From the NCBI GenBank assembly GCA_024704765.1, contig JAKMXF010000128.1, forward strand, positions 1 through 26,708: a stretch of DNA of 26,708 nucleotides, read 5' to 3'. Positions 3,534-25,714 of this stretch are shown here, one piece after another. Origin of the DNA: Oopsacas minuta. Taxonomy: Eukaryota; Animalia; Porifera. Position 1 is the first letter of the stretch. Each line of letters begins with the position of its first letter. Below the pieces are notes generated by a model. That model saw only the letters and a program-made list of their open reading frames with translations, was not told the DNA's origin and did not search any database. Made by a program: the position numbers and the translations under genes.

Positions 3534-3608
3534 ATTACAATGAACCACATGTACAATTCGTGTTACATACTTAAATCTCAGAATTCTAAACTCTCCTCAA
3601 ATACTACA
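3534..3608 (-). repeat. Right terminal inverted repeat of the Ginger1-like element
   Basis: Reverse complement TGTAGTATTTGAGGAGAGTTTAGAATTCTGAGATTTAAGTATGTAACACGAATTGTACATGTGGTTCATTGTAAT aligns to 14369-14443 with 6 mismatches and 2 single-base indels. TG..CA-type terminus. Confidence 0.8.
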
Positions 3609-3783
3609 TTTTTCCAAAAGTTGTATAACCTTTCGGACCTGTTCGGATTAGAGAGGGTATACTGTGGTTAGCAATGGATTTCACTATTCGAATGAAAGAC
3701 TCAAATTGCAAATGATTACGAGGAGAATTGATTCGATTGTTTACTGGTTATTATTAGAAAACTTTGTAAAATTCATAACAAAC

Positions 3784-4514
3784 CTATCTGTCCAGTAGCA
3801 ATAATACATTCGTCTAGATCATTATTAGGAAAAACAGATAGTGAAAGTATATCATCATTATGTTGATCGTAAAACCATTGGGTGTTGTTGACTATATCCA
3901 TAACAACTCCAACTGCTGCAGCATTATACACTATATGACTTTCATTCAAGAATTTAAGGTTAGAACGACAATCAAACCCCCTATAACCAAATACATAATC
4001 CAATTTAAGCGAGTTGAAGTCTGTGGTACCATCTCTAGTTAGTACTTTCGTGCTTTTAGAATCGCAATCTCTTTTGCTAGAATCCATTTTACCTTTATAT
4101 TGAGGTATATCAGTTCTATCCGAAATATCACGTACTGGATTTACATACGTCTTTTGCTGATAATCAATTTTCAATTCCCAATCAATATAACTATCATAGC
4201 CACCATCATCTTCTGAAGATAAATTCATTTCATTATTCATCAGTTTCCTATCAGTGCTTCCAACAGAATTAATAACCTTCCAGATTAAGATTGAGGTATC
4301 GTTGCCACCCAATGATACTAAATATGATCCATTATTTGAAAAGCGTACACATGTAACATGTGCAGAATGTCCAACATAACTCTTATGCTTTGCTTTATTC
4401 ACATAGGAAGGGTATTTGTAAATGCGAACATATCCGAGATCATCACCTGTAGCCATTAGCTTAGTATTGTTACAATCGAGGGTATTCACATCGGTTATAT
4501 CAGCCCCTTCATAC
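3784..4514 (-). CDS. EML6: EML5/EML6-like protein, internal (penultimate) exon: end of TAPE domain 2, acidic linker and HELP motif of TAPE domain 3
   Basis: 731-nt open exon between acceptor ttgtAG (4516-4515) and donor GT (3783-3782). Encodes YEGADITDVNT..ATGDDLGYVRIYKYP..GHSAHVTCVRF..GGNDTSILIW..SEDDGGYDS..LKLDYVFGYRGFDCRSNL..HNDDILSL..ATGQIG. EML5 versus EML6 cannot be distinguished. Confidence 0.92.
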
Positions 4515-5566
4515 CTACAAGAGCAACATAATTAGAACATAGTAAAGAGGTGTAGAATCTGCGGTGAGGTCGGAAAAAAACAACATGATTATAGTTGTTT
4601 TGGTAATAAGTGTAACGTTAAAGTGGTCACATGACCATACTCGGAATAATTCCAAAGTAACGCAAGATTATCTCAGGAATATGTTAAAATCCATCCTCCA
4701 AACTTATCCAAATTCTATCGAGTGACCCTTGTTCGACTCCGATCGACAAATTGAGTCTAGTTTCGCACATATCAGCGCTCTAAATGACAGTCTCACTCGA
4801 TTTTACGAGATCGTCCCCGTGGCTCTCTAATTCTCTTGCTATTCTTTCATATATTTCTTGTAAATACATGATAATATCGTTTGTTCTTGAGAGAAATATA
4901 TCTATAATTATAAATATATTATGTCTTAAGACGTGAATCGAGGCATTTGACCCCGGAATACATGCTAAGTTTATCAGAAAATTTTAAACTAGTCTAGCTA
5001 TAGTTACTAGTCATTCTGAATAATTGAAAATTATAACTCTTGGGAATGGGAATAATCCAAATCTGTCAACTGAAAAACTGTATAATGTGACAGATAGGGA
5101 TAGGTGGTGGTTTGACACAATATACAGAGTTCCAGTTGATCGAATTATGATTATCCCAATTCCGCCGAGTTAAATTTATGCAATTATTTAGAATAAGTAG
5201 TCACATACTGAATCTTCAAACAGAAAATTTTCTGATCAACTTAGTATAAATAATTAAAAAACGCCCCGAATTATGTCTTTAATCACATATTACCAAGTGC
5301 CGGTGTGGAAGGATTTCTCACCACAAAAATTCTCTGAATTAATTGAATAATTAATAACTTTGCGGTTAAACTACATAAGACATAGTTTGATAAAATTGAA
5401 ATGGGAAATGAGAATGCTATATATAAATGAAGGAATCACCAAATTGTTCATAACTAGATAATTAGCTGTAAAAGAATTCGTAATCAAACTTTTACCATGT
5501 AAATATCTTGAAAATATAGAATATTTATTTTAATTTATAAATTGTGTATAATATTTGTACTAATTT

Positions 5567-5839
5567 TCAAATCATCCCAATCATTGCTCCCAGAGACATA
5601 GCCACTTTAATTTTTGTGCCACCCATGGCACAGGTAGCACATATGACAGGAAGCCCCAAATCATAATACTCTACAGATGACATGATAAATGAATAGTATA
5701 CATTGATGCGAAGATACTTGAAGTTTTTTGTGAAAAACTCCCAATACTCAGTGGAGTCCTTGTAATGTGTACCACTAGTGCACAAACAGTAAAATGGCTG
5801 TATCTCCGGGAGGAATGATCGGAATGCTTTGAAAATCAC
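5567..5839 (-). CDS. Unidentified exon-like ORF (90 aa)
   Basis: Open frame with protein-like composition (DLGLPVICATCAMGG) preceded by CTAAC and a pyrimidine-rich ...caaAG. No family recognised. Confidence 0.25.
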   Translation of the reverse strand: MIFKAFRSFLPEIQPFYCLCTSGTHYKDSTEYWEFFTKNFKYLRINVYYSFIMSSVEYYDLGLPVICATCAMGGTKIKVAMSLGAMIGMI

Positions 5840-8154
5840 AAAAAATATTAGTTAGACTGTAATCAAAATTTTATAATAGTATACGTAGTTATACTATTTT
5901 AAAATTTTAATTGTATTGAGAGTCACTATGTAACTTGGTTGGAAATTCGTAGAGAATTGTAAACTAAACACAATGGAACCCTGCTTAACGAACACCAGAA
6001 TATCCATCACCCTGATAATCAGACTACCTCTCTTGACCACTCATTGAGGTTAATCCATACTAGCTAGGTGTCTGCGCGAAAGCTCTGCCCCTCCAATTTG
6101 GCATAAGTATACAGCTTCTAAATATTGAATTAGTCTTGTTAGCTGCGGGACTCAATATCTCGGCACTATATGCCTCGCGTCCTGAAATATAGGAAAATTA
6201 CTGAATAGATTATCCAAGATCTATCTAAATGAAAAATTATGACTGCACTCGTCACACTATAGCAGCTGCACAAGTTTTTGATTTTAATCTCGGTACTATG
6301 TAATCTCGGTACTATGTGCTTTGAGTAATACAAGATTATCATAAATGTCGAAATTTAAGAAAATTAGATCATTTTGTACAGTTATGGTGTCGTAAAGTTC
6401 CATGATGAGTTAGCATTTGGTCAACGTGATACAGTCAGAATATTTAACATATTGAGGAGTATCTGTAACTCAAATTACAACAATCTAACAACAATATTGG
6501 CTGAGGAGTGGCTAATAATCCGATTTTTCGAAAGTACTATAAGGTGACAATTATCTCGTCATAGGTAAGAATGCCGAGGGAATTGTCACATTTTTGGAAA
6601 TAATTTCGTAATAGGTATGAACTTTGTTCCAAGATTCAAAGTTGTCATAACCAGGTCCAAAATACCCCTGTATACCAAAAATCAGCCCTGGGGTTTTCAG
6701 TTTCTTCAATCAATTCTGGACATATATACATATAAGAATATACCTATGTATACGTATAGGGTGCAATCTAGAAAGATGATAGAGTGCAAAGTGATTATAG
6801 CAGTAATAAAAAATAATAGGATTGTGTGGAATCCGAAACGATGGACAATTTACTCAAGCTGTACCGAAAGTATCATTCTCGGGCTATATGCTCATAGATA
6901 ACTTCGAACTGAGATGGGAATGGTGTGATCTAGATCGTTTAAGTGATGACATAGACAAAGTGGTTACACTAATTGGATGTTAAAATACAATGAATGTGTT
7001 GTCTAAGAGCTATAAATCCGAAGATCAAGCTAAAAACATAGATATACAGTAGATAAGGGATACAGTGATAATATCAGCACTGAAAAGAGAACTTTGGTCC
7101 GTATATTTGACAAAAAGAATTTTGAATCGCATCGAGCAAATAATACTACATTCAGTTCAAGAAAAGAACAGAGCATCTAGAAATACCATGCAGAAAACTA
7201 TATAGCCAATTTTGATATGCTAAACTATGTACCTTAGTTCCCTGACTGAACAGGCGCCAGGAAATTCTCACGCACTTATTCAAGGAAATACGATAGTGTA
7301 TGTATCGTATATAATAATATTCGAAATAGTGATACAGCAAAGCCTAGTTAATACAAAGATGGATAATGCGGATTTCCGGATAAGACAAAGACACAATTAC
7401 ACTTGATCGGGTCCCTATAGTGTTGTCTAAATCGGTATAGTCTTATAAATACGATGTCCGAATTAGGTAAACAATATTAAACAGTCCTTTTGGGTTCGTA
7501 TTAACGAGGTTACGCTGTATATAGTTAGTGAATATTTGGCCGAAAATTATATGCCCCTGCCATAATCACTAAATCCATTATCTACTGTAACCAAAGAAAT
7601 TCTCGAGATCTTAAATGTAGACTAGTATGCCCAGGGGCGTACCTTGCGGGGGGGTGTGTGACACCCCACTCATCGCTAAACGGCCGGTAATCAGAACAGG
7701 CTAGAGTGATCTAATCCTGACAGCCCCAATTTCCACGAGACTTCATACTGCCATGTTAATAATAGTGATTACGTAATTAATCTGAGAAATAATTTCGCTC
7801 GCTACACTCTCTGGTAAAATAAATGATAGCACTAGTTTTCTAACAAGAGGCGGAATCCATTCAGCCAACACCTAAATACTTATTCTAGCCCTGCTCTTGT
7901 GTAATTGGGGATTGGCATTGGTTATATGATCGTAAAGGAGTACTGAATAATTAGAATATATGATCACGATACTTGAGTGAGTAGGGAAAACAGGGTGCAG
8001 TTTACAAAATATAATGTTATACCTCATACGTATATCGAATTTCCCCATTATAATAATTCACACAATAAACCCCATTTGACTAACTACTGGATCTTAAAAA
8101 ACGATAATTTCAGCGAGTGGATTAGGCAAGCGCTGAGTACTTTATATATCAGGT

Positions 8155-8480
8155 CATTTTACGTCATTTTCAGGTCATTTCAGGTCATTCAGACTCTTTA
8201 TAGCTCGTTTTCAGGCGAGAGTTTACGGTATTCTCTCTTCTCTGATAATCTTACCTTACTAACCTCGTCACTTAATCAACCCGTAAATTGAATTGAATTA
8301 CTTTCCATAATAAAGTCGACCAGTTTCGAGTATGATATAACTTCCTGCAAATAGGCTCTCGTCAAAATCAATACTGAGTCAAAACTGGCAGTATATCCAT
8401 CCATCCCTTAGTGTATGGTTCCCCATTCCTAAGTCGATTATTGCACTCAATGGAATCTTAAACGACCTAAATTTGACCTG
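8155..8480 (-). repeat. Dispersed repeat, inverted copy of 13565-13900
   Basis: 55-bp core 8366-8420 is the exact reverse complement of 13618-13672. Flanks are similar but diverged and rich in TCAGGTCA/TGACCTGA motifs. Confidence 0.85.
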
Positions 8481-8780
8481 AAAATTACCTAATTAACATA
8501 AGATAGAAATGGACTAGAGTTGGGCCATGATTCACAGTACATGTTTAGCATCTAATAGTACCCTATCTTAAATTACATGCAAACTGTTGGAATTTGTAAC
8601 AAACAATGGATAGTTAAATGATATAATCTCAGCTCAGCTCATGTAATGCATAGCATTAGTAAAATTTGCACACTCAAAATAACAAGAATCATTCTACACC
8701 TTTTAGACACACTCATAATTGTAAAATATCTAAGAAATTGACCATCTTTTTGTATTATTGTGTTACGTTTTATGCATTAG

Positions 8781-8990
8781 AAACAAACGGATCATGAGAT
8801 TATACTATTAGATTTAGAAAGTGCGTTAAGGGAGATATTATATTCAGTAAGACTTCCAGAAGATTATGAGGACGATATTATTGCAAAAGAAAAGGCAATA
8901 ACTTACAGACAAAATTCACCATTGGAGTGCACTTTAAACAAATTAATCAAAATTGTTAATCATTTATTAAAGATAGTAAAAACATTCTAA
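8781..8990 (+). CDS. Candidate orphan terminal exon (69 aa plus stop), product unknown
   Basis: Begins right after tttatgcattAG and reads KQTDHEIILLDLESALREILYSVRLPEDYEDDII...HLLKIVKTF* without a stop in very AT-rich DNA. Not in the ORF track. Confidence 0.3.
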   Translation, partial: KQTDHEIILLDLESALREILYSVRLPEDYEDDIIAKEKAITYRQNSPLECTLNKLIKIVNHLLKIVKTF

Positions 8991-9528
8991 AATGCATGGC
9001 TTGAATATTGTTATTGTCCTGAAAGTATATATCTTATACGTAATAACTTATTATATACCATTGTTACCCTTGTGGAGTGGAGAAGTTTTAAGTAATGTGA
9101 ACCAATTAACTTCTGTTTGTACAGACAGTAATGCTAGCGTTGTTTAGGATAGTAAAGCATAGTATTTTTAATTCTGAAAGCAGATTGAGGGAAGCAGATA
9201 TTATCAGGACCATTTACATGGATATTGATGATAGATTCATTCGCATTCACACATTTAGCTACAAAGTGTGAGGGGTACTGACGTTTGTTAAATGAATATT
9301 AATTGCATTTTCTATTCATGATATATGTCTTTATACAATATATTGAATAATTTGTGTAATTTGATAATATGATGTGTGAATTAGACTTGTATCTCCTATA
9401 TGAGTTATATATATAAGTATTTATTTGAGTATTTGATTTATAATCTTATTTATCGAGCTAAATGGAACCTCCCTAAAATTGAAATCGTAATTATCTACAA
9501 TGGAGTTTATATTACATGTATATGTTTT

Positions 9529-9589
9529 TTAGCCTAATAGCAATATTACTCTATAACTTTCTAATAGAGTAATATTGCTATTAGGCTAA
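9529..9589. repeat. Perfect hairpin (26-bp stem, 9-nt loop), possibly a 55-bp mini-MITE with TA TSD
   Basis: ttagcctaatagcaatattactctat-aactttcta-atagagtaatattgctattaggctaa. Confidence 0.9.
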
Positions 9590-9974
9590 TGAAGGAAGTG
9601 CTAATAGGCGAATACCATTGTAATATATAATCACAAAGCCCACCATACACGATGCAACTTTGTTGTATGCGACAAATTTACATGGTGTTCAGGAGCGGCT
9701 CAAATTGTCAGGCCAGTCAAGGCCATAACCTATTCAATTGTATGATCCGCAGGGTTGCCCTTAAGCAGGGATGTCCTGCTCTAATTATAAGTATGGGAGC
9801 GGTATTTCAAATTTCAAATTCAATTGAATATATCCTAATTTCCAATACAAAATTCAAACAATATACCGGTATTTGAATTAATAAGATAAATATGAAAATT
9901 ATCAAAGGTTTAGTACTAAATCTGAAAATAGAGTTCTAACAAGTAATTAAGTACCCAAAATTATTTAACTAATA

Positions 9975-10364
9975 TTACTGCCAAATTTCTTCTTGTTTAT
10001 GGGGTTCAGAAAATTTGGATTTCAAGCCATGGATATCTGTTGCTGAATTATGGTGCAAGAGCTAAGATTTAGAATATTCCAATGGTCTCCAAATAGTCAG
10101 TGGTGGACCATTAAGCTGGATAAACAGCAAAGAAGAAACGTGTTCTATTGTAAGCCAGTTTCGTTTCTCATCCAGTATGATATTCATTTGACTAAACCTC
10201 CTTTCGCATTCAGATGAGCTGCATGGAATAACTTCTACGCAGTTTATCAATGGCCTTAAAGCAGAAGGAGTTCGAATACCGATGTTGTCATAATATTCGC
10301 AAAATGCATCAACTAGGATTATTTCTGGTNTACAGCCACTTGGATATTCATACCTTGCAGGCAC
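9975..10364 (-). pseudogene. hAT transposase C-terminal dimerisation-domain fragment (ZNF862/KIAA1586-like)
   Basis: LINCVEVIPCSSSECERRFSQMNIILDEKRNWLTIEHVSSLLFIQLNGPPL: typical hAT S-x-CER-FS-MN / R-x-L / LNGPP motifs. Confidence 0.8.
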
Positions 10365-10538
10365 GCTTGTTGTTGTACCAGATGCAGCCAGAGGATTAAA
10401 GATCTAGGCCAGCCGTGCCCTATATGTCGCTCAGATATTGAGAACACATTTCAAATATTTGTTAATTAACACTAATTCAAGTTATTGTTCTGTTTTCAGT
10501 CTATTAAACTAATTCATATTCACTAATAAGGAACTCCA

Positions 10539-10603
10539 TTCTAACAAATGCAAACATATGAAAAACTCATTCTAACAAGTGTAAACTGTAGAAATTCTAA
10601 CAA
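10539..10603 (+). repeat. TTCTAACAA-motif subterminal repeat family, inverted relative to 25620-25714
   Basis: ttctaacaaatgcaaacatatgaaaaactcattctaacaagtgtaaactgtagaaattctaacaa matches the reverse complement of 25620-25714. Confidence 0.8.
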
Positions 10604-10975
10604 ATGACTACTTCTAAATTTTAACAAATGCATGCACCCTTTTCTTCATTATTCTATCATTAAGAAATTCATAAGTCAACAATCCTGCATGATAAAATTT
10701 AATAGAACCAAATATTGACTTCCATTAATTGATAATGCTTGAAAACATCAAACTTGATAGATCCAGAAATAAATGCATTTTATGATAGGATAAAGGTGTG
10801 GCTGACAGCCGCTATTAAAAATGCCAAAAATCAATGGCCTCAATTTGAATTTTGTTGAATTTTTACTGTGCCGACTATACTTCAGTATAAGGCTCAGTAT
10901 TGATCTTAGTGAAAAGTTGATTTTGTTATTTTTAGTTCCGGTGTGGGGCGGTCAGCTGTCCCCCTGGGTGAGCTG

Positions 10976-11716
10976 CAGGGCCGTCGAGAGAGCGAGCGGC
11001 CCCGGGTCATAATTTTTGGTGAGGCCCCCCTTTGATATTTTGTTCCGTTATCGTGAAGTGAATAAACTAAACGCAAACTATCGCATTCGTATTATATATA
11101 TATTAAAAAATTTTAATAAATAAAATCCTATTTACTCTTATATTTTATGCATTTTCAAATAGCCTATAGCTATATAGCTATAGAGTTTATGATTTTAAGT
11201 AGTATAATGAAAAACTAATACTACAAAGCTAATACTTCAAGAGTTATTGTAGTTAAGAACAGGAATATACAAAAATTTACGGTCAGTGTAATTAACAGAA
11301 AGCTTTGCGTGCCTTCTTCATAGCAAAATTATTGATTATGTCTTGAAAGTCAATACGCTTTGCAAGTTCAGCCTCGATGCTCAACATTGCGAGGTCGTTC
11401 AGTCTTCCCTGACTCATAGTGCTTCTCAGAAAGTTCTTGATGAGTTTCAACCTATTTACGCGTGCCTGCCGTTTGGATCGTATCCCGTAAACTGAGTAGT
11501 TATGGAAAAAAATTATAATTGATACAAAGCAAGTGAGGGCTGGATTTCTAGGAAGGATTAAATAACAAAGGTATTGCTCTGCCCAGCGATGTCTTTATTT
11601 TCTCCTTTACTTGTCTACTTAATGCAGCCAATAAAGCCCATGCATACCTTCACAGACAGAATTTCTCGGGCCCCGGGGTGACTACCCCCGCCTACCCCCC
11701 CCTCTCGACAACCCTG
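10976..11716 (-). mobile_element. 741-bp non-autonomous hAT element nested in the left arm of the long-TIR element
   Basis: TIRs CAGGGCCGTCGAGAG / CTCTCGACAACCCTG, with a perfect 8-bp TSD GTGAGCTG at 10968-10975 and 11717-11724. Confidence 0.93.
11292..11453 (-). pseudogene. hAT transposase last 53 codons (ZMYM1-like dimerisation domain) retained in the nested element
   Basis: RLKLIKNFLRSTMSQGRLNDLAMLSIEAELAKRIDFQDIINNFAMKKARKAFC*. Confidence 0.88.
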
Positions 11717-12170
11717 GTGAGCTGTCCCCCTGACTTATGGAACTAGGGCAAGGAGTCCCCCCGGACTAGTGGCACTAGGGTCAGCTGTCCCCCCGGACTT
11801 CTGGCACTATGACACCGGTTTCAACTGTACATACTTAGTGGCGTATCCACTATCCAAGTAGCGCGCAATGGGTGCTCGAGAATACCCCTTGAATAACAAT
11901 GATAGCAATTGATAATGATTTAGACAGAGATTGTTATCTAAAAATAAAACAATCACGTGATAGTCCTCTGTCTAATGCAATTTGGTAAGAAAATTCAATT
12001 AGTCCATATAAACTATTGGCGAATTATTTCGATTAATTGTCGTACTTTTCACTCTACAAGTTGAATTTAACTTATTCAGTATTCATCAAATTTAGGAAAG
12101 TTGCAATGTACATATATATTGTCTTATATTCCTTTGTACTCGATACTTATTTGAGTACTTTCTTAATTAG

Positions 12171-12810
12171 GAGTCCATAAGCGGTACAATATCGTCAAGT
12201 CCTCCATCACCATCTCCATTCTGGGTGCACAGTCTGAATCTCAACCCAACTGATGAGCTAGAAATACTTAATGGACTTTAGCTGACAGATAAACACATTG
12301 TTGCGGCTAAAACATTATTGAAAGAACAGCACCTACTTATAAATGGACTTGAAGACCCCTTCATACTTGCTGAAAAGCTTTCGTATAAATCAACTTAAAT
12401 CTAATTTGCCCAGATTGTAAACTTAGGTAGAACACACTGGGTCTGTGTTTCAAGCTTCAACTGTCTACCTGGAACTGTTGATGTTTATGATAGCATTCCA
12501 GCATGTTCCATGGGTTCGTTATCTTTGAGAAAACAAGTGGCTGTAATACTTCAAACAACTGAATGCAGTTTTGAATTACATTTTGTCGAAACTCAAAGAC
12601 AGTTGGAGGGAGCAGATTATGGACTATTTTCCATAGCTCTTGCTACAACATTATGTCAAGGTATTGACCTACATATGTGCTTCTTCGATCAAACTCAGAT
12701 GAGGATACATCTACACAGCCGTCTAGAACAATTGAACATGACTCTGTTCCCTCCATCAAAAAAACCTCGTCGAGAGTGCATGAAGAGATGGCAGAGAAAG
12801 GTCGTAGTAA
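12171..12810 (+). pseudogene. Ulp1/SENP-like (C48) cysteine protease remnant
   Basis: After acceptor ttcttaattAG: FWVHSLNL..*LTDKHI..QIVNLGRTHWVCVS..VDVYDS..QRQLEGADYGLFSIA..FDQTQMRIHL. The H-W and Y-D-S motifs are present. The catalytic Cys position reads Tyr (TAT) and there are three in-frame stops. Confidence 0.75.
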
Positions 12811-12820
12811 CAAGTAGATA

Positions 12821-13090
12821 CAGTGGCGTTTCTAGGCTTTTGATTACGAGTGTGCTAATTCATATGGGTTGACATTGAAATTAAAAAGATTTCGTCAGAC
12901 TATATTCACTATAATAGTAATTCTCTATCAATGAAGGTCAGGGAAGCACTTGATTTGATTGTAAGAAACACAAAATACTTGATTTTTAGACAACAATCTC
13001 TGCCTAAATCATTATCAATTACTATCATTGTTATTCAAAGGAGTTCTCGAGCACCCATTGCGCGCTCCTTGGATAGTGGATACGCCACTA
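12821..13090. mobile_element. Probable 270-bp hAT MITE
   Basis: Ends CAGTGGCGT.. and ..ACGCCACTA. Flanking 8-mers AGTAGATA and AGTATGTA match at 6 of 8 positions. Confidence 0.45.
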
Positions 13091-13564
13091 AGTATGTACA
13101 GTTGAAACCGGTGTCATAGTGCCAGAAGTCCGGGGATTCCTTGGCCTAGTGCCAGAAGTTCGGGGGAGTCCTTGCCATAGTGCCAGAGGTCCGGGGGGGA
13201 CAGTTCACCCTCTCACACCGTGTCCACCCTACAGCTGGCACTGTTTATGATTAAGAGCTGAAATTTTTCAATGGGTTCATTGTTACCTGTAGATTTACAC
13301 CTCGGAATAATTTTAATCTGATACAATTTGCCACTTTTGTGCCACTTCCTAATTTTTCTCATAGGAATTGTATTAGTTTTTGGAAAATAGAATACTAGGA
13401 GGAAAATCCTATTTCACACACCATCGATTGCCATGAGGATGAAGAAGAAATATATATAATTTTAAAGCATGTTTGTGTTACCCCATTAGGGCCCGGTCAC
13501 ACAAACCCTGCTGGTCAAAAGGTCCTACAAAGTCAGGTCAGGTCTCAAGATTAATCAGGCCAAT

Positions 13565-13900
13565 TTCAGGTCGTTTAAGAATCAATTGAGTACAATTAAT
13601 CAATTTAGAAATGCGAAAACCATACACTAAGGGATGGATGGATATACTGCCAGTTTTGACTCAGTATTGATTCTGACGAGAGTCTATTACATTGAAGATA
13701 TGTCATACTCGAAACTAGTTAACTGTATTTTGGAAAGTAATTCAATTCAATTAACAATTTACGAGTACTTTGACGGGATTAGCAAGGTAAGATTAGAAAA
13801 AATACGGTAAATTCCCTGGAGCATGAAAATGAGCTGAAAATATTTTGAGTGGCCTGGAAATGACCTGTAATTGATCTGAAATGTCATCAAAATGACCTGA
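13565..13900 (+). repeat. Dispersed repeat, inverted copy of 8155-8480, with AGGTCA/TGACCT arrays
   Basis: Exact 55-bp core 13618-13672 (aaccatacactaagggatggatggatatactgccagttttgactcagtattgatt). Motif arrays extend over about 13530-13970. Confidence 0.85.
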
Positions 13901-14368
13901 AGTAACCTGATTCAGGTCAGCCCATTTAGTGAGCAGGCTTGTCCAAAGGTCAGGTCATGACCTGACACTTATTTATATATTTAGAACTATCTAAGTCTAA
14001 TTAGGGCCACATGACTGAAGCATATGCTAAGCCCAGTACCGGATTTAGGGTGTTTTGGGCCTAGGGCTAAGTCATTATTTTGGCCTACCCTACCATTTTG
14101 ATACCCTATTTTATGGAACTGAACGGAACGTGCAATTTACGCATACGTTATTTGCTTAAATAATGGTCCCGACGATTATATTTTCGTGCAGGAGAATACT
14201 CAAACCAGCTTTTCATCAATTATCGAAATAAATTTTATTTGAAATTTTGTGTGGTGCTACCCTATAGCACGTATTTGAGCCTTTGAGGGCCATTTAGGAC
14301 AGTATAATATTATACTGTTGTGTAATAATTGAGATTCTTGTATTAAGAAACACCATGGACACTCATAT

Positions 14369-15987
14369 CGTAGTATTTTGAGGAGGGTATAGAATTCTGA
14401 GATATAAGTATTAACACGAATTGTACATGTAGTTCATAGTAATTTGGTGATAAATGTGTGCTGAGATTTTGTGTTACTTAAATAAGTACATAAACTCCTA
14501 CATGATCGAAATCACAATATTTTGATAATTCAAAATACTTGTACGTGAACTTTTTATTGTTTTTCTGAAATTACTTCTCTATTTTAAATTCATTTTGTCA
14601 TTGGAATCCTCACATTTGAATGGATCCCGAAGAACTCAGAGCAATCATTGAGTTCCATCAGCGTGGCTAAATTCCAGGAACTCTCTCTGCTGAAGGTTAA
14701 GGAATTTCAAGATAAAGGCAAATAATTATACCCTCTCTGAGGAAGAACCAAACAGGCTTTTCAAGGTAGGTATAAAAACATTTATTCCGTTTGTATACGT
14801 ATACAAATTTAGATTTTAAGATAAGCTGAAAAATTGATACTATTTAATATTTACTTATGTCTAGAAAGTCTCCAAGAGTGGCCTACAGTTGGCTCACGAA
14901 GTCCCCAGTTGTGATAAACTTGGTTCAATCTTTGTACAATATCACGATCAATTAGGTCAAGCTGGGATCAATTCTACAATACAATTAATCCAGCAAAGAT
15001 ACTATTGGGTAGGAATGTATCCAGATTTTCAAAATTATGTGAGTGTTAAAATGTGATATTAGCAAATACTGTACAAGTTAAAATGTGGACCGGTAGTCCT
15101 TACTTGAACCGTTGTACTGGCCAATTCATAACAATCCAACTGAAATTAGCTTCAAATTTTGTTTTGTTTGATATACTTATAGGCAAAAAAATGCGTTACA
15201 TGTCAAGAGACAGCCGCTTTACCCCCATAACCTCAAAGGAAATTACAACCTATTCCACCTCCAGAAACTCCTTGGAAGCACATAGGGATGGATCTATGCG
15301 ATCTCCCTGAGACCCCTGAGGGTTACAAACATATACTAGTGACAGTCTGCTATCTCTCCAAGTATGTTATTGCAAGGCTACTCAAGACTAAGACAACCAC
15401 TGAAGTCATTGAGCAATTGGAAGATATCTACCCTGAATTAGGATTACCAGATATCATGTAACATGATCAAAGAAAGGAATTCACTTCAAAGGTATATATA
15501 TTTATGACATTATGCTTCAGTACAAGCATTACTAATTTTAGTAATTTATAATTTGCAAGATATTATCTAGGAGCGCCGGACGCTCCTCTAGGCGCATGAT
15601 TGTTGATGCTATTGTAGTTAGGAGCGTAAAATTGAGGATCTTCCCTTATATCGTGACACTAATTTACTGATTTAGGCGTATGAAAATTTGAGAGGAGGGC
15701 CGCTAGGAGCGTGCTCTGAAAACCCTGTATAACCCCCTGATAATTTGTTGCTAACGTTTATACTTGTAGCTATTTCACGAGTTTCATAAAAAACTACATG
15801 TTTACAATAGAAGTACTCGTGCATACCATCCAATGGCAAATGGACTGGTCGAGGCCGACAATAAGATTCTCAAAATGTGAGTGTTCCAATTATGTAATAA
15901 TAAATATCCCTTTAATAATGTTGATGCAATGTGGGTTACAATCGAAAATCTGTTTAGCTATTAGGTAGAAATACTTCTAGAAGTACA
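14369..15987 (+). mobile_element. 5' half of a decayed, intron-containing Ginger1-like transposon (left TIR plus four integrase exons)
   Basis: Left TIR 14369-14443. Exons 14620-14765, 14865-15038 (HDQLGQAG..QRYYWVGMY), 15183-15491 (CVTC..PWKHIGMDL..HDQRKEFTSK) and 15770-15876 (YHPMANGLVEADNKILK), separated by GT-AG introns. D-D-E residues are identifiable; several stops. Confidence 0.85.
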
Positions 15988-16306
15988 TTTTTACTGTGCC
16001 GACTATACTTTAGTATAGTGGCCCAGTATTGAAATGGTTGCCTATATTATGATTATTTATCTCCGTAAAAGCCCTGCAGCCAAAACTTGATAGAATTAAT
16101 CTGATATATACCGCCGTATTCACTAAGCATACTTAGTACTTAAGTACTAAGTACGTACTTAAGTATCACTTATATTCATGAATTTGTGAGTTTCTGATGG
16201 ATTGCTTTACAGAATTACTTTCAATCATTCAGGAATATATTTTCAAAACTTCTCATGTTTTATGCATGATCTCACGANCATTTATGAAAGGTGTGAACAC
16301 TACATA

Positions 16307-16491
16307 CAGTAGAACTCGGATAAGACGTACCCGCTCGGGAAACAGAAATTAGTACGTCTTAACCGAGTGTACGTCTTATCCGAATATGTTTGCATTACAA
16401 ATAATGATACTGATATTTTGGGATATAAGAAATGGTACGTCTTAACCGAGTGTACGTCTTAAGCCGAGTACGTCTTATCCGAGTTCTACTG
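16307..16491. mobile_element. 185-bp Tc1/mariner (Tigger/pogo-type) MITE
   Basis: Perfect 24-bp TIR CAGTAGAACTCGGATAAGACGTAC, TA at 16305-16306 and 16492-16493, internal GTACGTCTT repeats. Confidence 0.93.
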
Positions 16492-18827
16492 TACTTTCAA
16501 CTGTTTCCGTTGATTATTCTAGAATTGAGCAATCTTAAGGTGCTTGAAAAGAACATTGAGAAGAAAATTCACCTTTTCATCAGAGCAAACTCCAATGTTT
16601 CCAACTCATTGGGAATACACTTCTATTTAGAAATCATTTCACCCTAAAATCCTTCATTAGCACAAATTGTTACCATTACGATGGAATGAGGAACAGAAGG
16701 ATAAAATTTGAATAAAGTTCTAATCAGACACAAAATAGTTAAGTCAACTTTGTAGTGTACATGCTTATTCGATGTTAGTTGACTTTTAGCTTAGGCATTG
16801 CAGTCGTTTTAGTACGAAGTGTTTCAAAATTAGTAAAAATATATAGGAAAACCATTTGCATTTGCAGAGTCAGATTTTATCTAAATATATGGGCGGAGTA
16901 AGGGGAGGGCTAATTATGAACAGTTTGAATCAGGTTCGAAGAAGAATACCAGTCGAATTGGTTAATACACCTGGTACCGCTTGTATCTAAGCGGAAGATA
17001 TAGTATATCCTGAGGGTGATAAGTCATTATTATGCGTAAGAAGCCATATGCTAGTTAACGCTAAACCGCAATAATAAACAACTGAGTCATAACTTGTAAA
17101 TCGACAACATCTCGCACAATATATATACCCAAATATCCAATTAACTTTCTCAATTGATGCATGATGTTTAATCACTTTGAAATGCTAATATTGGTAATCA
17201 GCATTATAATTTTGGGTCACATGACCATGCTTGTAGAAAGGATTTTTTGGTCAAATATACAATTTCTCCCAGGCTGTGTACCGGTATGTACCCCTATACT
17301 TTCCCTTCCTATCGGGCTCTCTATCTTATAGAAGATTAAGTTCATCATGTCATTTCGAATGGCAATAGTCTCAGCTTCTGATACAGCAGATGCTGGACCT
17401 AGTTGTAATAACTTTGACTCGACTTACCGGATATAGGAATATTAAGTCCAGTCCTGACGATATTCCTTTAACCAGCATCCAATGTATTGTCTAATACGAA
17501 ATAAATATATACAAAATACCGAATAAAGGCGGAGAGGCACCTATAAAAATAGCCATCTCGAAATAATATAAATTCTCCAGGCCTCCATAGCCATATCTTT
17601 TTTAAATATATTTAGCAATTTTATTGCTATGCCACCTCACGATTGGCCTAACATTTCTATGTAACAGCGAAAAACGATTGGAAATTCATGAAAATTGCGG
17701 TTAGCATTTGTATAGCTCTACTTTTCGCTCCAGTTGCGAACGTGTTAGTATGTTGCTTAAATTTCATAGGCTATTTTAGCGTGTATTTAATAGACATTTT
17801 TGCATTTTTATATTTTAAGTGTGTATTATTAAATCAGTAGATTATTCTTTCTGAGAGTAATGTCTAGTGAATTATTAGATTATCCTTTCTTAGGCCATGT
17901 AAAATAAATTACTTGTTTCTTATCCATTTTTTCTGCGAAATAGCGGCGAGGGGCGGCTTTTTATTTTTATTTTTTGGTTAGCGTCATTTTACTAATTTAT
18001 TTAAACTATCTCGTTAATACGAATTTCTGATAAGATGAACAATATTCGTACATAATCAGGTCTCTACAACCGTACTTCAATGGATATTACTCCGGTTTAT
18101 GAACTCCGGAAAGGCGAATAAATTTTAACCATACGGACGGTGCGTTGGTGTTCGTATTAAGCTTATACTGTATATGGGAAAACTGATATTCACTTCCTCT
18201 CTATAATCTGAATTATTATACAATTTAAATAATAATGATAAAATTAATAATAATAAAAATTTAGTGCACACCCAAGGGCTAATTTTTGCCATACAGGGAG
18301 GGGTATTTGGGGCCTGACTCGGACAGGTTTGAGTCTTGGACGAAATTTCACTCCTGACGAAATTATGATGCATTGCCACCTTTTTGGATTTTCGAAAAAT
18401 CACATGGTTAGCTTGTTTCGAAGATGTTCATCTGCGAATATATGTATTAAATAAAGATATGTATTAAAATTAAAAAAAATGCGGAGGAGGGAGATTAAAT
18501 GGGGCGGGCGGGGATTATAAACAAGTATATTATTTTATATGGCCTTAGTGTAATGTCTAGTGAACTTGAAATTTTGACATATTTAAGCAAAAATGTTTTT
18601 GCGGGTTTGATCCATGAAAACAATTACTAAGCTTTTACGTTAAATTTGATTCTATGATCATATGTGCATCAGCTCTTGGAGTCCTTTGTTCTTAGTGCCT
18701 GTTTTTTGCTAATTTGCCCTAAACCTTTATATTTGGTTAATTTAAATTGTTTCTGCTTTGTATAACGAAATTAATTGTAGCTTTTTTGTATTACATTTTT
18801 TGACTTAAAGAAATTAGCATAATACCA

Positions 18828-21094
18828 ATGTCAAAAGAAAAATAACTAAGATCCAAACAGCTACTGTTCCAAAAGTCCAAAATGGGCAATAGATTCAATT
18901 TTCTCTAAAATAACTACTCAACTTGGAGAAGAGACATGACACTTCAGATACTGAGTTGACTATTGATGTACCAAAATTTAGTGAGGATTCTCATGAATGT
19001 AAATCTGAAACTGGCAACAAGAAGAAGAAAGATTCTATCAAATCTATTATCAAAACTAATAAGTGTATTGTAATGTTTCAAAATCAGGCAGATCAAGATA
19101 TGTATGTGAACTATATTTTAAGTTCGCAAAAACAATGTAATACCGAGGCAAAATTCCAGCCATTTGTACGGCAAATGAAACCATACTGCGACTTTCAGAA
19201 CTGCAAGAACATATTCCTCTGAAATTCATAAAAAATCATGTAGTGCTGAAAATGTTCCGAAAATGTCTAATGTTGAAAAGACGACAAAAACAGAAATCGG
19301 ATGTGTATTTCAAATCAGAATGCAGCTATTTGTAATAGAATTGGCAGTCTAATGATTGAAGTGTTCAACAATTGTAAACGAGGAACAATATCTGCATGGC
19401 CCTGGCCAAGTATTCATATCTCAAATACTATGACCAGTGAGTTTGACATGAGATCTCCCCATGTCACTTATAACCCATCGCCGGGCATTTTCTCCTATGT
19501 GACACCAATGCAACATGCTGATTTGTTGTCATATATTGTTTCTAGACAAACCTGAGTTATTAACCAAAATCAAACCTGCATTGGCAGTTTCATTGGCAAT
19601 TGATGGTTCAGTAGATCGTTTTCAATTGGATAATAAGTACGTGAAATGTAAGATTTTACAACTGAAGGAGAACAAGAGGATCTTTTTTTGGGATTTTCGG
19701 AGTCAACGGAAAGGAAAACAAAAGGGTATGTATCTGCAGTCAAGGAAGCAGTATCTTTTACAATTACTTGGAAAGATCTGTTTGACAACATTACATGTAT
19801 TGTAACTGATGGTGAAAGTCTGAATAATAGAGAACACAACAGCTTGTGGAAAGTATTACAAGATGAACGTTCATATTCTACTTCAAATCCAACTCTTCCT
19901 TTAATAAAAATATGGTGCGCTGCCCATAGGTCAGACGTTGCATTTGGAAAGTGTCAAATCAGTAAAAGAAGTAAATTTACAAATTTCAGATGCCTGTGGG
20001 TTGTCAACATTCTTCCACACATCTTCTGTTAGAATTAAAGAATTAGAAATGATAGCATCTCATCATGATTTAAAAGTAAAACACATTCCAAAATATTTTG
20101 AAGCTAGATGGACCGAATTTTCCTAAAGTATATTCTGTGGCATTCAATTTTCTTGGCAAGCTATTGTAAAATATTTGCAGTACACAGAAGATAGATCTGC
20201 TCAGCGCCACATAAAATTCATAACAGATAGGACAAAATTTCGAACAAATTGTTGTGTTGCTGATGTTCTACAGATATATTCTAGATTTCAGAAAGCTATT
20301 CAAGATAACTGTGTTACCTATTTTGATTCAACAACTTAACAAAATGAAGTCTACAATGCTAGTAGGAGGGTGGGAATATAACTTCAATGGAAACTACAAT
20401 GAAGAAGCATCTACTTTCTTTGGTATGAATTTAATAGATAAGCAGAGGAGAACAAACCATACACCTGTCTCTGTGAAAAGGGATTTCTCCGCAATTCGTT
20501 TTGAAATTATTGACTCTCGTATAAATATTTTAGAGGAAAGATACCATCTTGACTCAGAAAGAGTAAAACAACTACACCTATTGAAAATTTAAATTCTGAA
20601 GTAACTGAGGAAGAATTGAAAAATGCTATGAGATTATTATACCAGAATTAGACCTTGCATCTCTTGCATTACAATATAGAGATGCTTGTGATGCATTTGG
20701 TAATGCAAATATGGCACCAATTGAAATTGTAAAATCCATAATTCAATCTGGATTATTAGCGGATCACAAAGAAATTGTAACCGCATTTGCACGGATTGTC
20801 ACAGCAAACTACATTCGTTGAAAGGCTGATAAAATCTTACAATCTCATAAACCGAAGACCGGGCTAATCTATCATCTATTACACTGAAGAATTATTTATA
20901 CATTTGACACAACATGCCTGGTTTCTGAGTTTAATCCTCGCCCCTGTGTATTGAAGTTGTTAAATGATAAAGAACGTTGAGATGTACTTTCAAAAAAGAG
21001 TAAAGAACAACGCTGGTTTGCTTCAATATTGAAAGAAGCATATGAAGAAACTAAGAGAAAAGCAACTACACAATCAGAAAAAATTGGTTTCTGA
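18828..21094 (+). pseudogene. hAT transposase pseudogene (ZNF862-like), many frameshifts and stops
   Basis: Collinear fragments: KRGTISAWPWPS, SLAIDGSVDRF (D1), CIVTDGES (D2), IWCAAHRSD (CxxH), YFEARWTEF (RW), VERLIKSYNLI..DRANLS..LKNYLYI (E and dimerisation domain). Confidence 0.85.
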
Positions 21095-22222
21095 GAAAAT
21101 ATTATTTATCGGATTGTTGATAATTAATTGATATAGTAGAATAGTGTTTCGATCATATGCAAAATAAACATCAAGTTTACATTTTTAGAATGCGTGTACT
21201 TTTAGATTTTCCTTAGATAGCTTATGTGCTTAATAGGGCATTTACAACTTTCCTGCAAAATTAGCTTGGTACTATGTATTCCCATGCTAAACCCTAATGC
21301 TCCCTCGACAACTAATTTAATTAACATACTAAGTTGTCGGCATAGATTTTAGATATTTTCAAAAGTCTGTCAAAAAGGGGAGCCCTAAGTTTAATGGACA
21401 ATTACAGAATATGAAAAATTTGGGACCGAGAAAAGTGTTCATATTTTGGAGTTGTTCATTTCTTAGAGGCGTTCACTTTTGGAGGTTTTACTGAATTATC
21501 AGCAGCATGTATTTCTAGAACATCCCAATGGATATATTTTCATACATTTCCTTACAATAATGCATTATTAATGGAAAAATGGTGATAGCTATAGTCATCG
21601 TATAATGTATAAACTATAATTGAATATTCATTTCATTAAATGTCCTATATTTTCAAATGAGGAGATGGCCATGAAATTAAGGGGATGGCTGAATATTGCT
21701 TGCATATTTATAATGGTTATAAAACGCATAGTTCATGAAATGAATTCATCATTTGAAAAGAAGAGGGAAAACCAACATCCAGACTTATTAAAGGAGCGCA
21801 CACATTGGGACGCGCTCCTATTTAAATGCAAACAATTTACAAATTTCATCGTTATTTTGCATAAATTCAGTTTTCTTACTGTATATGTGGATGCTGGGAC
21901 ACTTTTGTATAATTCACAATTTATTGAAATGGTTTGTTGTATTGCCAATGGAAATCGGGTATAAAATCACGTATTTATTGGTGGATTTCAATGAGATGAG
22001 AAGAGAAACAATAGATTTCCATAGGAAAATAGAAACAAATTCGTTTCTACATAATAGTAATACAAATACTGTTTTGATACTCCATGGCTAATAATCGAAA
22101 AATGTATGACGTTCTCCATTTTTCTATTTTATTTAGAATATCATAAGTCACAACCCTACGAGTTATTGATATAATTTAATCATCAATGTAACCAAAATTA
22201 CTGACTTTCCGTGAGTTGATAG

Positions 22223-22389
22223 CAGTATTCTCTGATTTCCGGGGATGCTGTCAAAATTCTTGGGGTATAACAAAATATTCGGGTGGTACAAGTAATATAT
22301 TGCAATAATGGAAGAAATTCAGGAAAATATCCTCAAACATTTGTAAGCGAAAATTCTGGGAGCCCCTGAATTCCTTAGAGGGAACGCTG
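22223..22389. mobile_element. 167-bp decayed hAT MITE
   Basis: Ends CAGTATTCTC / GGGAACGCTG. Flanking 8-mers GTTGATAG and GTTGATAA match at 7 of 8 positions. Confidence 0.65.
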
Positions 22390-23182
22390 GTTGATAATAC
22401 ATTCTAAACATCAAAACAAGACAGATCTAGGATGAAATGAATTTAAAATACGATAAGAGCCAAGTTGCGCCCCGCAAGTAAGGAAGATAAATAATGAAAT
22501 GTGTGTACGCTTTCACGTGTTCGAATTAACATGTTCTTATTTGTTCGAAATTCTAAGATTGTCATTTGTTCGACTAATATATTCCTTTGTTGTCATTTGT
22601 TCGACTGATATTTCTTATATTGTCATTGTTGTATTAACAGTATTAGTCCTACTCTCGTTGATGGCGTTAAGCAAGTCCTAGTCTTTTCGTAGTTTTTGTA
22701 GAGGGAAGGCGCATACATTAGTTCTACTTGTATGTAGGTTTAGTTTGAATACTTGGCACAACGTGCCAAATTAGTCTACAATTTATGATTGTATTTTACA
22801 TGTAGTCAGTAGAAACATATGAAAGGTTGGTTGTTTCGCTCATCATGATTTTGCATAAATAATTATGGATCGGATTCAACTTCATCATTAATATATTCCT
22901 GGACAAAATATACCTCTTTCGGTCGTGAAAATATATACTAGGTCACTCCAGTTACATACATTGTTATCCATTATAGAGGAATACAAATATCATGAGTGAG
23001 AATAATGCTATATTATGAAAATATAACTATTAGAGAAAATAATTTTCATCTCGACTAAGTATATGGAACGAAAACATATAGATATGTATACCCTATACTT
23101 CATCAATAATTAACAACTAATTGTCCTAACTAAACTCAAATTATCTAATAAATGTAATCACGAATCTATAATATTAAGGTCT

Positions 23183-24765
23183 CTAAACATCTTTAATTGT
23201 TTTCCAAAGAAAGACACAAGAGTCGTCACCACCAGTAGTTACAAGATAATCGTCGTTACAGGTAAATCTCAGATTTGTAACGTGAGCAGAATGCCCATGA
23301 AATTGAAGATATGTTGCATTCTTTTTATTAACAGGAAAGTTAAACAATTTTACTAATCCATAATCATCACCAGTTGCAAGTATATGACCACGGTTGGAAA
23401 GATGGGAATTATTCACATCCCCAGATTCTGAATCTTCTGACCAGATTCCTAAGAGATCTGGACCACTCACACACGTTAATGTTGACCAAATGATTTTCCC
23501 AATAACTTCATTATCCAATATGAGATTAGCGTCACTTATTTGGTAAATTAAGCGTTGATACTGTAATGTATTTATTTGGATAAAGTTAGAATCATGAGAC
23601 CAATCAAGATTTGATGTAATTCCTTTAAATCCTTTACATGTAGCATGTTTTATTAGATGTGGAAGTTTGTAGATATCTACAAAGTTTTTCGAACAAGCAA
23701 CAGCCAATTTGGTTCCATCTGGAGAAAATTTAATAATATTAATGGTTGATGAGTAATCTCGTTTTTTCTTGATCGCGGACTCCATCTCCAACGTTCCATT
23801 CTCTTTCAGTTCAAATAATGTAAATTGTCCATTACAGAAACCAGCAGCAATTAAATCTGCGTTAGGATTTATATCAATGCTTTGAGCTGGGCCTGATAAA
23901 TTTTTAAGGGTGCTAATTATTCTTTTGGTACACAGATCCCATGATTTAATACAAGAATCATGTGAAGCAGTAATTGCAATCATCTTACTTGGATGAATCG
24001 CTAGACCCCATAACTCTCCATATCCATGTCCTTGATTCAATATTGTTTTAATATCGTCTTTAATTTGAATTATCATGCTATCATTGGTGCCAACTATTAT
24101 CATATTATTAATGGAATCAATCGCTCTAATGTCTGAAGCAATGTTTCTACTAATTATTTCTTGGATTTTCACTCCTTCAAGGGACGATAATTTTAACACT
24201 ACATCAATATCAGAAGAACCTCTTGAACCACTCAAAATACCATCAGGATGAGAAGCTAGAGCCCAAATTGGACCATTATGTAGTTTAATCGTATTGCTAA
24301 TCAAAAGGTCTTGAAATATATACATTGTTCCACTCAAACTACCTACAATAATTTTTTGATCACCACATTCCAATATTGATAACATAGTTTCACAAGGTGT
24401 ATCTATCCCTAAAGATAGTCTTTCTGAAACCATATTGCTTCCAGTAACACACCAATACTTTATATGTGAAATACCACATGTGATCAGAGAAAGATTATCA
24501 ATTTGATTAGATTGTTTAGATTTCGGTGTCGTTATACACAATACCTGAAATATTCGGTATTGGCTTCCATCGACTTTCGAAATTAATGAGCCTTCTCTCC
24601 AGTTCCAAATAGCTATTGTATGACAGTCATCAATTCCCACTGATGCTAACAATATGCCAGAATTTGAAAAAGAAAGAGAACACACACCTTTACTGTGTGC
24701 ACCTGTTAGAATTGACTCTGGCTCTTTGTTAAAAACTTTCCATACATGAATTGATCCATCTTTAC
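23183..24765 (-). CDS. EML6: EML5/EML6-like protein, terminal exon (rest of TAPE domain 3, 526 aa after the split Gly)
   Basis: Acceptor ctattAG (24767-24766), then GKDGSIHVW..AHSKGV..QGHGYGELWGLAIHP..KFSPDG..LDWSHD..ATGDDYGLVKLFNFP..GHSAHVTNLRF..GGDDSCVFLWKTIKDV*. 1583 nt uninterrupted and collinear with the EML6 C-terminus as I recall it. Confidence 0.93.
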
Positions 24766-25619: not shown

Positions 25620-25714
25620 TTGTTAGAATTTCTACAGTTTGCACTCGTTAGAATGAGTTTTCATATGTTTGCATTTGTTAGAATGAGTTTTTCATATGTT
25701 TGCATCTGTTAGAA
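25620..25714 (-). repeat. TTCTAACAA-motif repeat, inverted copy of 10539-10603 with one extra unit
   Basis: Tandem pair of an about 30-bp unit, gttagaatgagttt(t)tcatatgtttgcat(t/c)t. Confidence 0.8.

Follow-up and report, generated by a model that had tools for sequence, protein, structure and literature searches.

Why should two exons of one gene lie in an order that no linear transcript of the DNA could give? The window analysed here is the entire 26,708-bp scaffold JAKMXF010000128.1 of the sponge Oopsacas minuta (assembly GCA_024704765.1), and it carries two exons, A and B, of a microtubule-binding gene of EML type (echinoderm microtubule-associated protein-like) on its minus strand, where exon B, the one with the stop codon, lies upstream of exon A and is separated from it by 18.7 kb. 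A preliminary description of this DNA had drawn attention to the two open, phase-matched minus-strand exons and to their inverted succession, and had offered misassembly, duplication, a recent rearrangement or obligatory trans-splicing as explanations. We conclude that the scrambled order is very probably an artefact of scaffold order, and the gene itself neither scrambled nor trans-spliced.

The arrangement of the exons was confirmed. Exon A is bordered by an acceptor (...ttgtag/GT, the slash marking the splice boundary) and a donor (ATAG/gtttgt), the intron before it being of phase 2 and the intron after it of phase 1, whilst exon B starts at ...ctattag/GTAAAGAT; the splice phases of the two are compatible (G/GT), and when joined they give a single 770-codon reading through ...ATGQI-G-KDGSIHVW..., with its sole stop at the end. 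By Pfam, exon A contains the tail of an EML second propeller (Beta-prop_EML_2, PF23414, 188-266/266), a linker, a HELP motif (PF03451, residues 168-203, 5e-17), which places the protein in the EML family, and the start of a first propeller. Exon B contains profile positions 42-266 of Beta-prop_EML (PF23409, 5.7e-36) and 1-265 of Beta-prop_EML_2 (PF23414, 4.1e-80), the latter being the whole second propeller. Because the Pfam halves of A and B are complementary, they form one TAPE domain (EML first and second propellers in tandem) split over two exons, the end of exon A providing the start of the first propeller, and because exon A opens with the last blade of an earlier TAPE unit (the PF23414 tail), the protein has at least two such units. 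Multi-TAPE genes of EML5/EML6 type show the same succession of HELP motif, first and second EML beta-propeller; the earlier identification as EML5/6-like was correct, as was the A-to-B join, which an RNA contig backs (see below).

Compared with full EML5/6 genes the scaffold holds the last 770 residues only. Related sponges have additional EML exons upstream, and those of O. minuta lie outside this scaffold; when the window was searched by tblastn with both exons and with two multi-TAPE EML proteins of full length, no further EML piece came up, in agreement with the earlier remark that no preceding EML exons were found between the two. A+B matches a three-TAPE relative of 1960 aa (P0002) collinearly over residues 1185-1960, the closest matches in the representative library extend over 3-4 aligned stretches, and identity to non-sponge EML5/6-like proteins is only ~33-39%. 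Exon B shares 71-74% amino-acid identity with single open-reading frames on long contigs of related sponges.

In five of five related sponges checked, the orthologous exons occur on one strand in the order A then B with the same splice positions, the splice sites of exon A being placed as in relatives L002 and L003. The intron between them varies from 0.64 kb (L005) through 2.65 kb (L002/L007), 5.96 kb (L003) and 12.4 kb (L008) to ~15.4 kb (L006 with L009), and its non-coding DNA is not alignable with that of O. minuta, only short repeat families matching. Exon-A-like matches in the protein collection comprise only the exon in the window and one per relative, and none of the relatives examined shows a second EML copy in the 10 kb that follow exon B. 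Like its counterparts in related glass sponges, the O. minuta gene appears to be a normal EML5/6-like gene whose large introns are filled with transposons.

Sequencing reads (runs X1 to X3 and RNA run X4) were analysed over scaffold positions 1-5600. In X4, where exon A is very deep, one RNA contig leaves the genome at the exon A donor (3782..3784, minus strand); its loose end before position 3782 is TCCATCTTT, the reverse complement of which is AAAGATGGA and, with the shared GT, GTAAAGATGGA. Within the window this 11-mer is found at one place only, the very start of exon B; unspliced genome beyond the exon A donor would read GTTTGTTATG. The A-to-B junction, carried by this one contig with a 9-letter overhang, joins the exons in an order that the scaffold DNA cannot give, as in a scrambled or trans-spliced gene, but a cis-spliced gene on a wrongly ordered scaffold would be expected to give it just as well.

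We also considered whether B-then-A could be the natural order, by way of an internal donor in exon B (TG/GTCAGA) that keeps a conserved Trp codon. This was rejected: the start of A and the end of B are, by Pfam, the same blade from two different TAPE units; the relatives match A+B collinearly and have exon A ahead of exon B; and in RNA the junction leads from A into B.

The scaffold itself is composite. Two single N characters (n = 2, positions 10330 and 16278) divide it into three contigs, C1, C2 and C3 (Table 1). Neither the N characters nor the fact that the window spans a whole scaffold had been recorded in the preliminary description. These joints separate exon A, on contig C1, from exon B, on contig C3, and the non-collinear order of the two is not carried by contiguous DNA; with two joints between the exons, the earlier proviso that no single DNA molecule might span both in this order effectively holds at the level of the assembly. 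The N at 10330 is a true discontinuity and not an ambiguous base, since the hAT fragment to its left and the RING domain to its right are both cut there, and we take both N characters as genuine breaks in the sequence. The contigs are 5.9-10.4 kb in size and end in repeats or multi-copy transposons, and there is no overlap between the ends of any pair of them. The published pipeline combined a SPAdes hybrid assembly, SSPACE with Nextera mate pairs, pilon and GapFiller, with a reported coverage of 186x (PMC10280926).

The left end, at which the assembly broke, is formed by a repeat of very high copy number (bases 1-561) whose depth runs into thousands; in the reads over 1-5600 the depth of this end repeat is ~100x that of its neighbours and reads exit it in many differing directions. 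As the left end is a high-copy repeat with many continuations, the scaffold breaks inside the A-B intron. A lookup of Logan contigs via a 571-aa open-reading frame found none on record that extends the scaffold. An inverted 72-nt repeat has one arm at 25620-25689 and the other at 10532-10603, where C2 starts; a target-site duplication for this pair (25620/10603) was sought and not found.

Table 1. Contigs, joints and annotated features of scaffold JAKMXF010000128.1.
Feature	Position	Strand	Remarks
Contig C1	1-10329		Carries exon A
Contig C2	10331-16277		
Contig C3	16279-26708		Carries exon B
C1/C2 scaffold joint	10330..10330	.	Single N
C2/C3 scaffold joint	16278..16278	.	Single N; the Ginger1-like transposase half in C2 meets it without a C-terminal half
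Ginger1-like element, 3' half	1..3607	+	Head of C1
Ginger1-like post-core stretch	669-911	+	'TPFRVIWGR'; motif read by eye
GPY-like stretch	1303-1560	+	'LGPYTV'; by eye; no Pfam or PDB match
Ginger1-like OTU protease domain	2557-2979	+	Pfam OTU, 1.8e-07
Ginger1-like 3' TIR	3534-3607		TIR alignment
EML exon A	3784..4514	-	C1; 243 open codons plus one leading base and one trailing G
hAT C-terminal fragment	10065-10328	-	Dimer_Tnp_hAT; stops at N 10330
RING finger	10332-10466	+	zf-C3HC4_3 13-48/49; begins at N 10330, first 12 profile positions absent
Ginger1-like element, 5' half	14370..16277	+	Tail of C2; decayed
Ginger1-like 5' TIR	14370-14443		TIR alignment
Ginger1-like integrase zinc finger	14865-15053		Pfam Integrase_H2C2, 7.6e-11
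Ginger1-like integrase core, N-terminal part	15231-15458		Pfam rve 4-63/102, 0.0033
EML exon B, terminal	23183..24765	-	C3; 526 open codons, then TAG
Right scaffold end	24766..26708	.	Acceptor-side portion of the A-B intron
MULE transposase fragment, truncated	26550-26708	+	Pfam MULE 45-98/99, 3.1e-05; closes the scaffold

A second feature of the window, a transposon, is permuted in the same way. Ginger1 transposases carry an integrase followed by an OTU domain in elements of 2.6-7 kb, with terminal inverted repeats (TIRs) of 40-270 bp and TGTNR termini (Bao, Kapitonov and Jurka 2010, PMC2836005). The tail of C2 and the head of C1 hold the two halves of a Ginger1-like element, and C2 joined to C1 gives a single element of 5.5 kb with its TIRs facing inward and a TGTAG terminus. 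It shares with Ginger1 (PMC2836005) a gypsy-like integrase (H2C2, DDE core and GPY-like stretch) combined with a C-terminal protease of the OTU/Ulp1 kind, here by Pfam matches to H2C2, to the N-terminal part of rve and to OTU, the GPY-like stretch having been read by eye. It further shares TIRs of ~74 bp, the TGTAG terminus, a length of ~5.5 kb once the halves are joined, and the presence of introns, seen in RNA run X4 as GT..AG joints on the plus strand of the 3' half. It differs in that its reading frames are decayed, the middle of the DDE core is not identified and part of the element lies in the assembly gap. A PDB sequence search with two transposase stretches gave no matches. The element has no target-site duplication, its flanks reading ATAT and TTTT and not CCGG or CCGT, and with none found the two halves could stem from different copies.

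Only the order C3-C2-C1 mends both the gene, with an A-B intron of ~11.7 kb, and the Ginger1-like transposon, at ~5.5 kb. Gap marks lie between the permuted parts, features are cut at those marks and one re-ordering mends several of them; as the transposon is permuted like the EML gene, the permutation is not specific to spliced genes. Misassembly, which the preliminary description had ranked first, is therefore supported in a more exact form, as a mis-ordering of three contigs at the scaffold level, and not as a chimeric contig.

We infer that the true sequence is most likely C3-C2-C1 with the present strands kept, which is equivalent to flipping every contig in place. The contigs would have broken within transposons and high-copy repeats and then been linked through mate pairs by SSPACE, so that neighbour relations are probably correct and the order along the strand is reversed. 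Read in this order, the minus strand would present exon A, an intron of ~11.7 kb plus the gaps, full of transposons and with the Ginger1-like element sitting inside it, and the terminal exon B, and the pre-mRNA would be spliced ordinarily in cis. A confusion of inward and outward mate-pair orientation may have swapped the order whilst keeping the strand, the resulting negative gap being written as one N. The locus shares with known cases of mis-ordering by mate-pair scaffolders its small, repeat-ended contigs, its feature-cutting single-N joints, the use of SSPACE on Nextera mate pairs and the mending of two independent features by one reversal of contig order; it differs in that the orientation confusion is deduced from SSPACE behaviour and is not documented in PMC10280926. 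The literature on how SSPACE handles negative gaps yielded nothing directly usable.

B would also precede A if the genome truly held a tandem or segmental duplication, or if a circular repeat unit had been collapsed. The true sequence would then be A1-B1-spacer-A2-B2, the scaffold would represent B1-spacer-A2 and the missing partners would lie just outside it. Both scaffold ends would fall within an A-B intron, as this requires, the wrap-around intron of 5,726 nt fits the sizes in the relatives, and two sequence versions ~0.5% apart exist in the flanks. However, this arrangement mends the gene but not the Ginger1-like element, whose halves at the end of C2 and the start of C1 would still be parted by C3; the 18.7-kb spacer contains no EML exon, so that the second copy would lack all upstream exons; the relatives examined show no second copy in the 10 kb downstream of B; and the scaffold order it takes as given depends on N joints and not on contiguous sequence. 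Exon A itself has no variant positions and, in the cleanest DNA run (X1), a depth at the single-copy level, 117 against 223 over an adjacent transposon piece. This 2:1 ratio is absent from runs X2 and X3; given the reported coverage, the depth of exon A looks compatible with a single copy. A duplication is thus unlikely, and the tandem duplication with alternative C-termini that had been proposed earlier is disfavoured by the unrepaired transposon, the relatives and the single-copy-like exon A. A circular scaffold or collapsed tandem unit was examined separately and rejected, there being no end overlap and the Ginger1-like element being left unrepaired.

We consider it very unlikely that the error is of another kind, with contigs that are not neighbours or that belong in an order other than C3-C2-C1, in which case the gene would still be canonical. 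The contig ends do not overlap, no target-site duplications tie the transposon halves together, and the ends are multi-copy transposons, across which mate-pair links may mislead. Nevertheless, the complementary Ginger1-like halves break off precisely where C2 ends and C1 begins, and C1 and C3 each hold an exon of one gene, which in unrelated contigs would be a large coincidence. The order C3-C2-C1 accounts for both.

A real rearrangement in O. minuta that placed B upstream of A, with the junction made by trans-splicing or by back-splicing into a circular RNA, is highly improbable. Both exons are intact and expressed, and in scaffold order the RNA junction that links the donor of A with the acceptor of B is formally a back- or trans-splice. 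Yet two unrelated features within 26.7 kb are permuted alike and exactly across gap marks, trans-splicing cannot explain a permuted transposon, all the relatives checked have a canonical exon order and canonical splice sites, and there was no sign of a spliced leader or of any other trans-splicing signal. Back-splicing would need transcription past the stop of B and through the 18.7-kb transposon-rich spacer, yet RNA depth in X4 is zero over 4676-5600, directly upstream of exon A. Scrambled and trans-spliced genes of ciliates, of Giardia and dinoflagellates, and Drosophila mod(mdg4) likewise combine a difference between DNA and mRNA exon order with an RNA junction; in contrast to them, the DNA order here is without contiguous support, the relatives are canonical and a non-spliced transposon is equally permuted. 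The recent rearrangement and the obligatory trans-splicing raised in the preliminary description are disfavoured by the co-permuted element and by breaks that fall exactly at the gap marks. Were the scaffold order real, the permuted Ginger1-like element could be a further trace of the local event that rearranged the EML gene, e.g. by excision of circular DNA and its re-integration, which we regard as scarcely probable.

The biological import of the locus is slight, the EML5/6-like gene being ordinary. Single-N joints in the O. minuta draft GCA_024704765.1 can conceal contigs in reversed order with their strand kept, and such reversal gives rise to apparent 'scrambled genes', to 'permuted exons' and to 'split transposons with outward TIRs'. 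The published annotation splits the EML gene into separate single-exon models, a 227-aa gene for exon A (P0213) and a 544-aa gene for exon B (P0151), and this split will distort the gene counts and domain inventories of a much-cited 'compact' sponge genome.

The preliminary description placed two minus-strand EML exons in the window, and both are present and open at the positions in the table below: exon A, with an acceptor ...ttgtag/ before it and ATAG/gtttgt at its 3' end (the slash marks the exon border), and the terminal exon B, with an acceptor ...ctattag/ and the first bases GTAAAGAT. The proposed splice join is borne out, as A and B together give one 770-codon reading across ATGQI-G-KDGSIHVW, collinear with residues 1185-1960 of P0002, a 1960-aa EML protein with three TAPE units (first and second beta-propellers in tandem). 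By Pfam, the contents of the two exons are complementary: exon A comprises the last blade of an EML second propeller (profile positions 188-266 of 266), a linker, the HELP motif and the initial part of the first propeller, and exon B has first-propeller positions 42-266 and a complete second propeller. A tblastn search of the window gave no further EML piece, between the exons or elsewhere, and in the scaffold exon B does lie upstream of exon A on the minus strand, 18.7 kb away.

Coordinates of contigs and features in the scaffold
Feature	Position	Strand	Remarks
Contig C1	1-10329		carries exon A
Contig C2	10331-16277
Contig C3	16279-26708		carries exon B
EML exon A	3784-4514	-	243 open codons, with a single base before and a G after them
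EML exon B	23183-24765	-	526 open codons, then TAG
Ginger1-like terminal repeat, 74 bp	14370-14443	+	C2 tail
Integrase H2C2 zinc finger	14865-15053	+	C2 tail; 7.6e-11
Integrase core, N-terminal part	15231-15458	+	C2 tail; rve 4-63/102
'TPFRVIWGR' stretch		+	C1 head
'LGPYTV' stretch		+	C1 head
OTU protease domain	2557-2979	+	C1 head; 1.8e-07
Matching inverted terminal repeat	3534-3607	+	C1 head; 91-94% identical
C3HC4 RING finger, C-terminal two thirds	10332-10466	+	zf-C3HC4_3, 1.7e-11; ends in stop codon
hAT dimerisation domain fragment	10065-10328	-	cut by N 10330
hAT/ZMYM-like C-terminal stretch, second	11295-11594	-	read by eye only
MULE domain fragment	26550-26708	+	cut by scaffold right end

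Logan contigs of four runs of the sequenced sample (X1-X4) were aligned to positions 1-5600. Run X4 behaves as RNA-seq, with very high depth on exon A, zero depth from 4676 on and GT..AG joints. One X4 contig departs from the genome at the exon A donor, with an overhang TCCATCTTT (plus strand) that is the reverse complement of AAAGATGGA, the GT common to intron and exon B having already been taken up by the alignment. The RNA thus reads ...CAGATAG GTAAAGATGGA where the unspliced genome has GTTTGTTATG. The sole match to this 11-mer in the window lies at exon B's first base, so A is joined to B in the mRNA, as the preliminary description predicted; one contig shows this junction. The published annotation has two separate single-exon genes here, one of 227 aa at 3785-4513 (-) (protein P0213) and one of 544 aa at 23186-24817 (-) (P0151) which starts at an intronic ATG. 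Its RNA mapping used TopHat with -I 5000, i.e. a 5-kb maximum intron (PMC10280926), so long introns of the EML gene would be missed. A plus-strand cluster of open-reading frames lies downstream of the EML stop codon (19688-20032 and 20263-20592); one is a 109-aa gene in the authors' annotation, and one has a weak, sub-threshold match to the STING transmembrane domain (E = 0.007).

The scrambled order is very probably not a real genomic feature: the order of the contigs appears to have been reversed at single-N scaffold joints, a form of the misassembly that the preliminary description ranked first, and undoing this reversal mends both the gene and a transposon. The window is the whole of scaffold JAKMXF010000128.1 (26,708 bp) in GCA_024704765.1, the draft genome of the glass sponge Oopsacas minuta. 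The assembly was made with SPAdes from Illumina and corrected PacBio reads, scaffolded by SSPACE with paired-end and Nextera mate-pair reads, polished with pilon and gap-filled with GapFiller (PMC10280926). Single Ns stand in the scaffold at positions 10330 and 16278, so it consists of three contigs (C1-C3). These Ns are true discontinuities: at N 10330 a C-terminal hAT fragment on the minus strand breaks off and a plus-strand RING finger begins without its first 12 profile positions; the RING fragment ends 65 nt ahead of an inverted repeat (10532-10603). No overlaps were found between the contig ends. The order of B before A thus depends on scaffolding links, without contiguous sequence. An assembly error of another kind is a slim prospect.

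The second broken feature is a Ginger1-like transposon, whose halves are each cut exactly at a contig end, that of C2 and the start of C1. In Ginger1 transposases an OTU or Ulp1 domain comes C-terminal to a Gypsy-type integrase (zinc finger, DDE, GPY/F), in elements of 2.6-7 kb with terminal inverted repeats (TIRs) of 40-270 bp, TGTNR termini and possible introns (PMC2836005). Joining the C2 end to the C1 start gives 5,515 nt plus the gap, with inward TIRs, TGTAG at one end and CGTAG at the other, and resembles Ginger1 in its integrase-then-OTU order, TIRs, TGTAG terminus and length. The halves have no recognisable target-site duplication (flanks ATAT vs. TTTT), so they may conceivably come from two separate copies. 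The gene needs C3 before C1 on the plus strand and the transposon needs C2 directly before C1, so only C3-C2-C1 fits both. A real duplication is improbable; reading the scaffold as circular or as a tandem repeat also mends the gene, with an intron of 5,726 nt, but leaves the transposon interrupted by C3.

With strands kept, C3-C2-C1 is equivalent to inverting every contig at its present position, and the scaffolder's neighbour pairs C1-C2 and C2-C3 would be retained with their direction alone reversed. When the facing of mate pairs is mixed up (outward taken as inward, or the reverse), two neighbouring small contigs would be swapped with their strands kept, and SSPACE would write the resulting negative gap as a single N. 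Such a mix-up may have reversed the order here.

The decayed 3' half of the transposon is covered by plus-strand spliced X4 contigs over 553-3223, with GT..AG joints at 1016-1308, 1601-1671, 1874-1956 and 2061-2408, and is therefore transcribed and spliced despite stops in the upstream frame; it includes a 141-codon open stretch with the OTU protease domain, and may represent either a dead transposon that is still transcribed or an OTU gene that has been co-opted. In X1, the cleanest DNA run, depth is 117 on the exon-A region (3616-5600) vs. 223 on the transposon piece (562-2907), which with the reported 186x coverage suggests that exon A is single-copy; X2 and X3 lack this ratio, and depths in X2, X3 and X4 are roughly equal on both stretches. 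X1 has the reference letters, whereas X2, X3 and X4 have 14 others across 553-2907 and several across 4738-5088. There are two sequence versions, ~0.5% apart, and different runs of one sample kept different ones; possible reasons are heterozygosity, pooling of individuals or another copy of the transposon.

At the scaffold's left end, bases 1-561 have depths in the thousands vs. 40-220 nearby (summed word depth ~22,000 vs. ~220 adjoining), and reads exit in many different directions. Sub-boundaries at 86/87, 172/175 and 399/401 occur in this stretch, whose repeats look like nested MITE-like insertions, and a 90-nt hairpin pair lies at 390-479 and 502-591. C1 ends here because of these high-copy repeats; the assembly breaks in a repeat within the intron after exon A.

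Six other sponge assemblies have open-reading frames with 60-74% identity to exon B, on contigs 0.24-1.96 Mb long, and the exon A/B neighbourhoods were inspected in five relatives. A gene that is genuinely permuted and trans- or back-spliced is the least credible reading; all five relatives have the two orthologues on one strand with A upstream of B, and the two closest of those inspected for splice sites have the same acceptor and donor positions (...ag/GTATGAAGG, ATAG/gt, ...ag/G[TC]AA). The 10 kb downstream of exon B contained no second EML copy in any of the five. Their EML exons further upstream are small, with ~5-kb introns between them and transposons inside these introns, which accounts for the lack of an EML exon in the 5.8 kb upstream of exon A within C1. 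The A-B intron measures 0.64 kb in relative L005, 2.65 kb in L002/L007, 5.96 kb in L003, 12.4 kb in L008 and ~15.4 kb in L006 with L009. Under C3-C2-C1, an inverted 72-nt pair (25620-25689 and 10532-10603), for which no target-site duplication was found, would flank the MULE and RING fragments, and the A-B intron of O. minuta would be 3783 + 5947 + 1943 = 11,673 nt plus two gaps, inside the relatives' range and containing the Ginger1-like element with MULE and hAT-like fragments.
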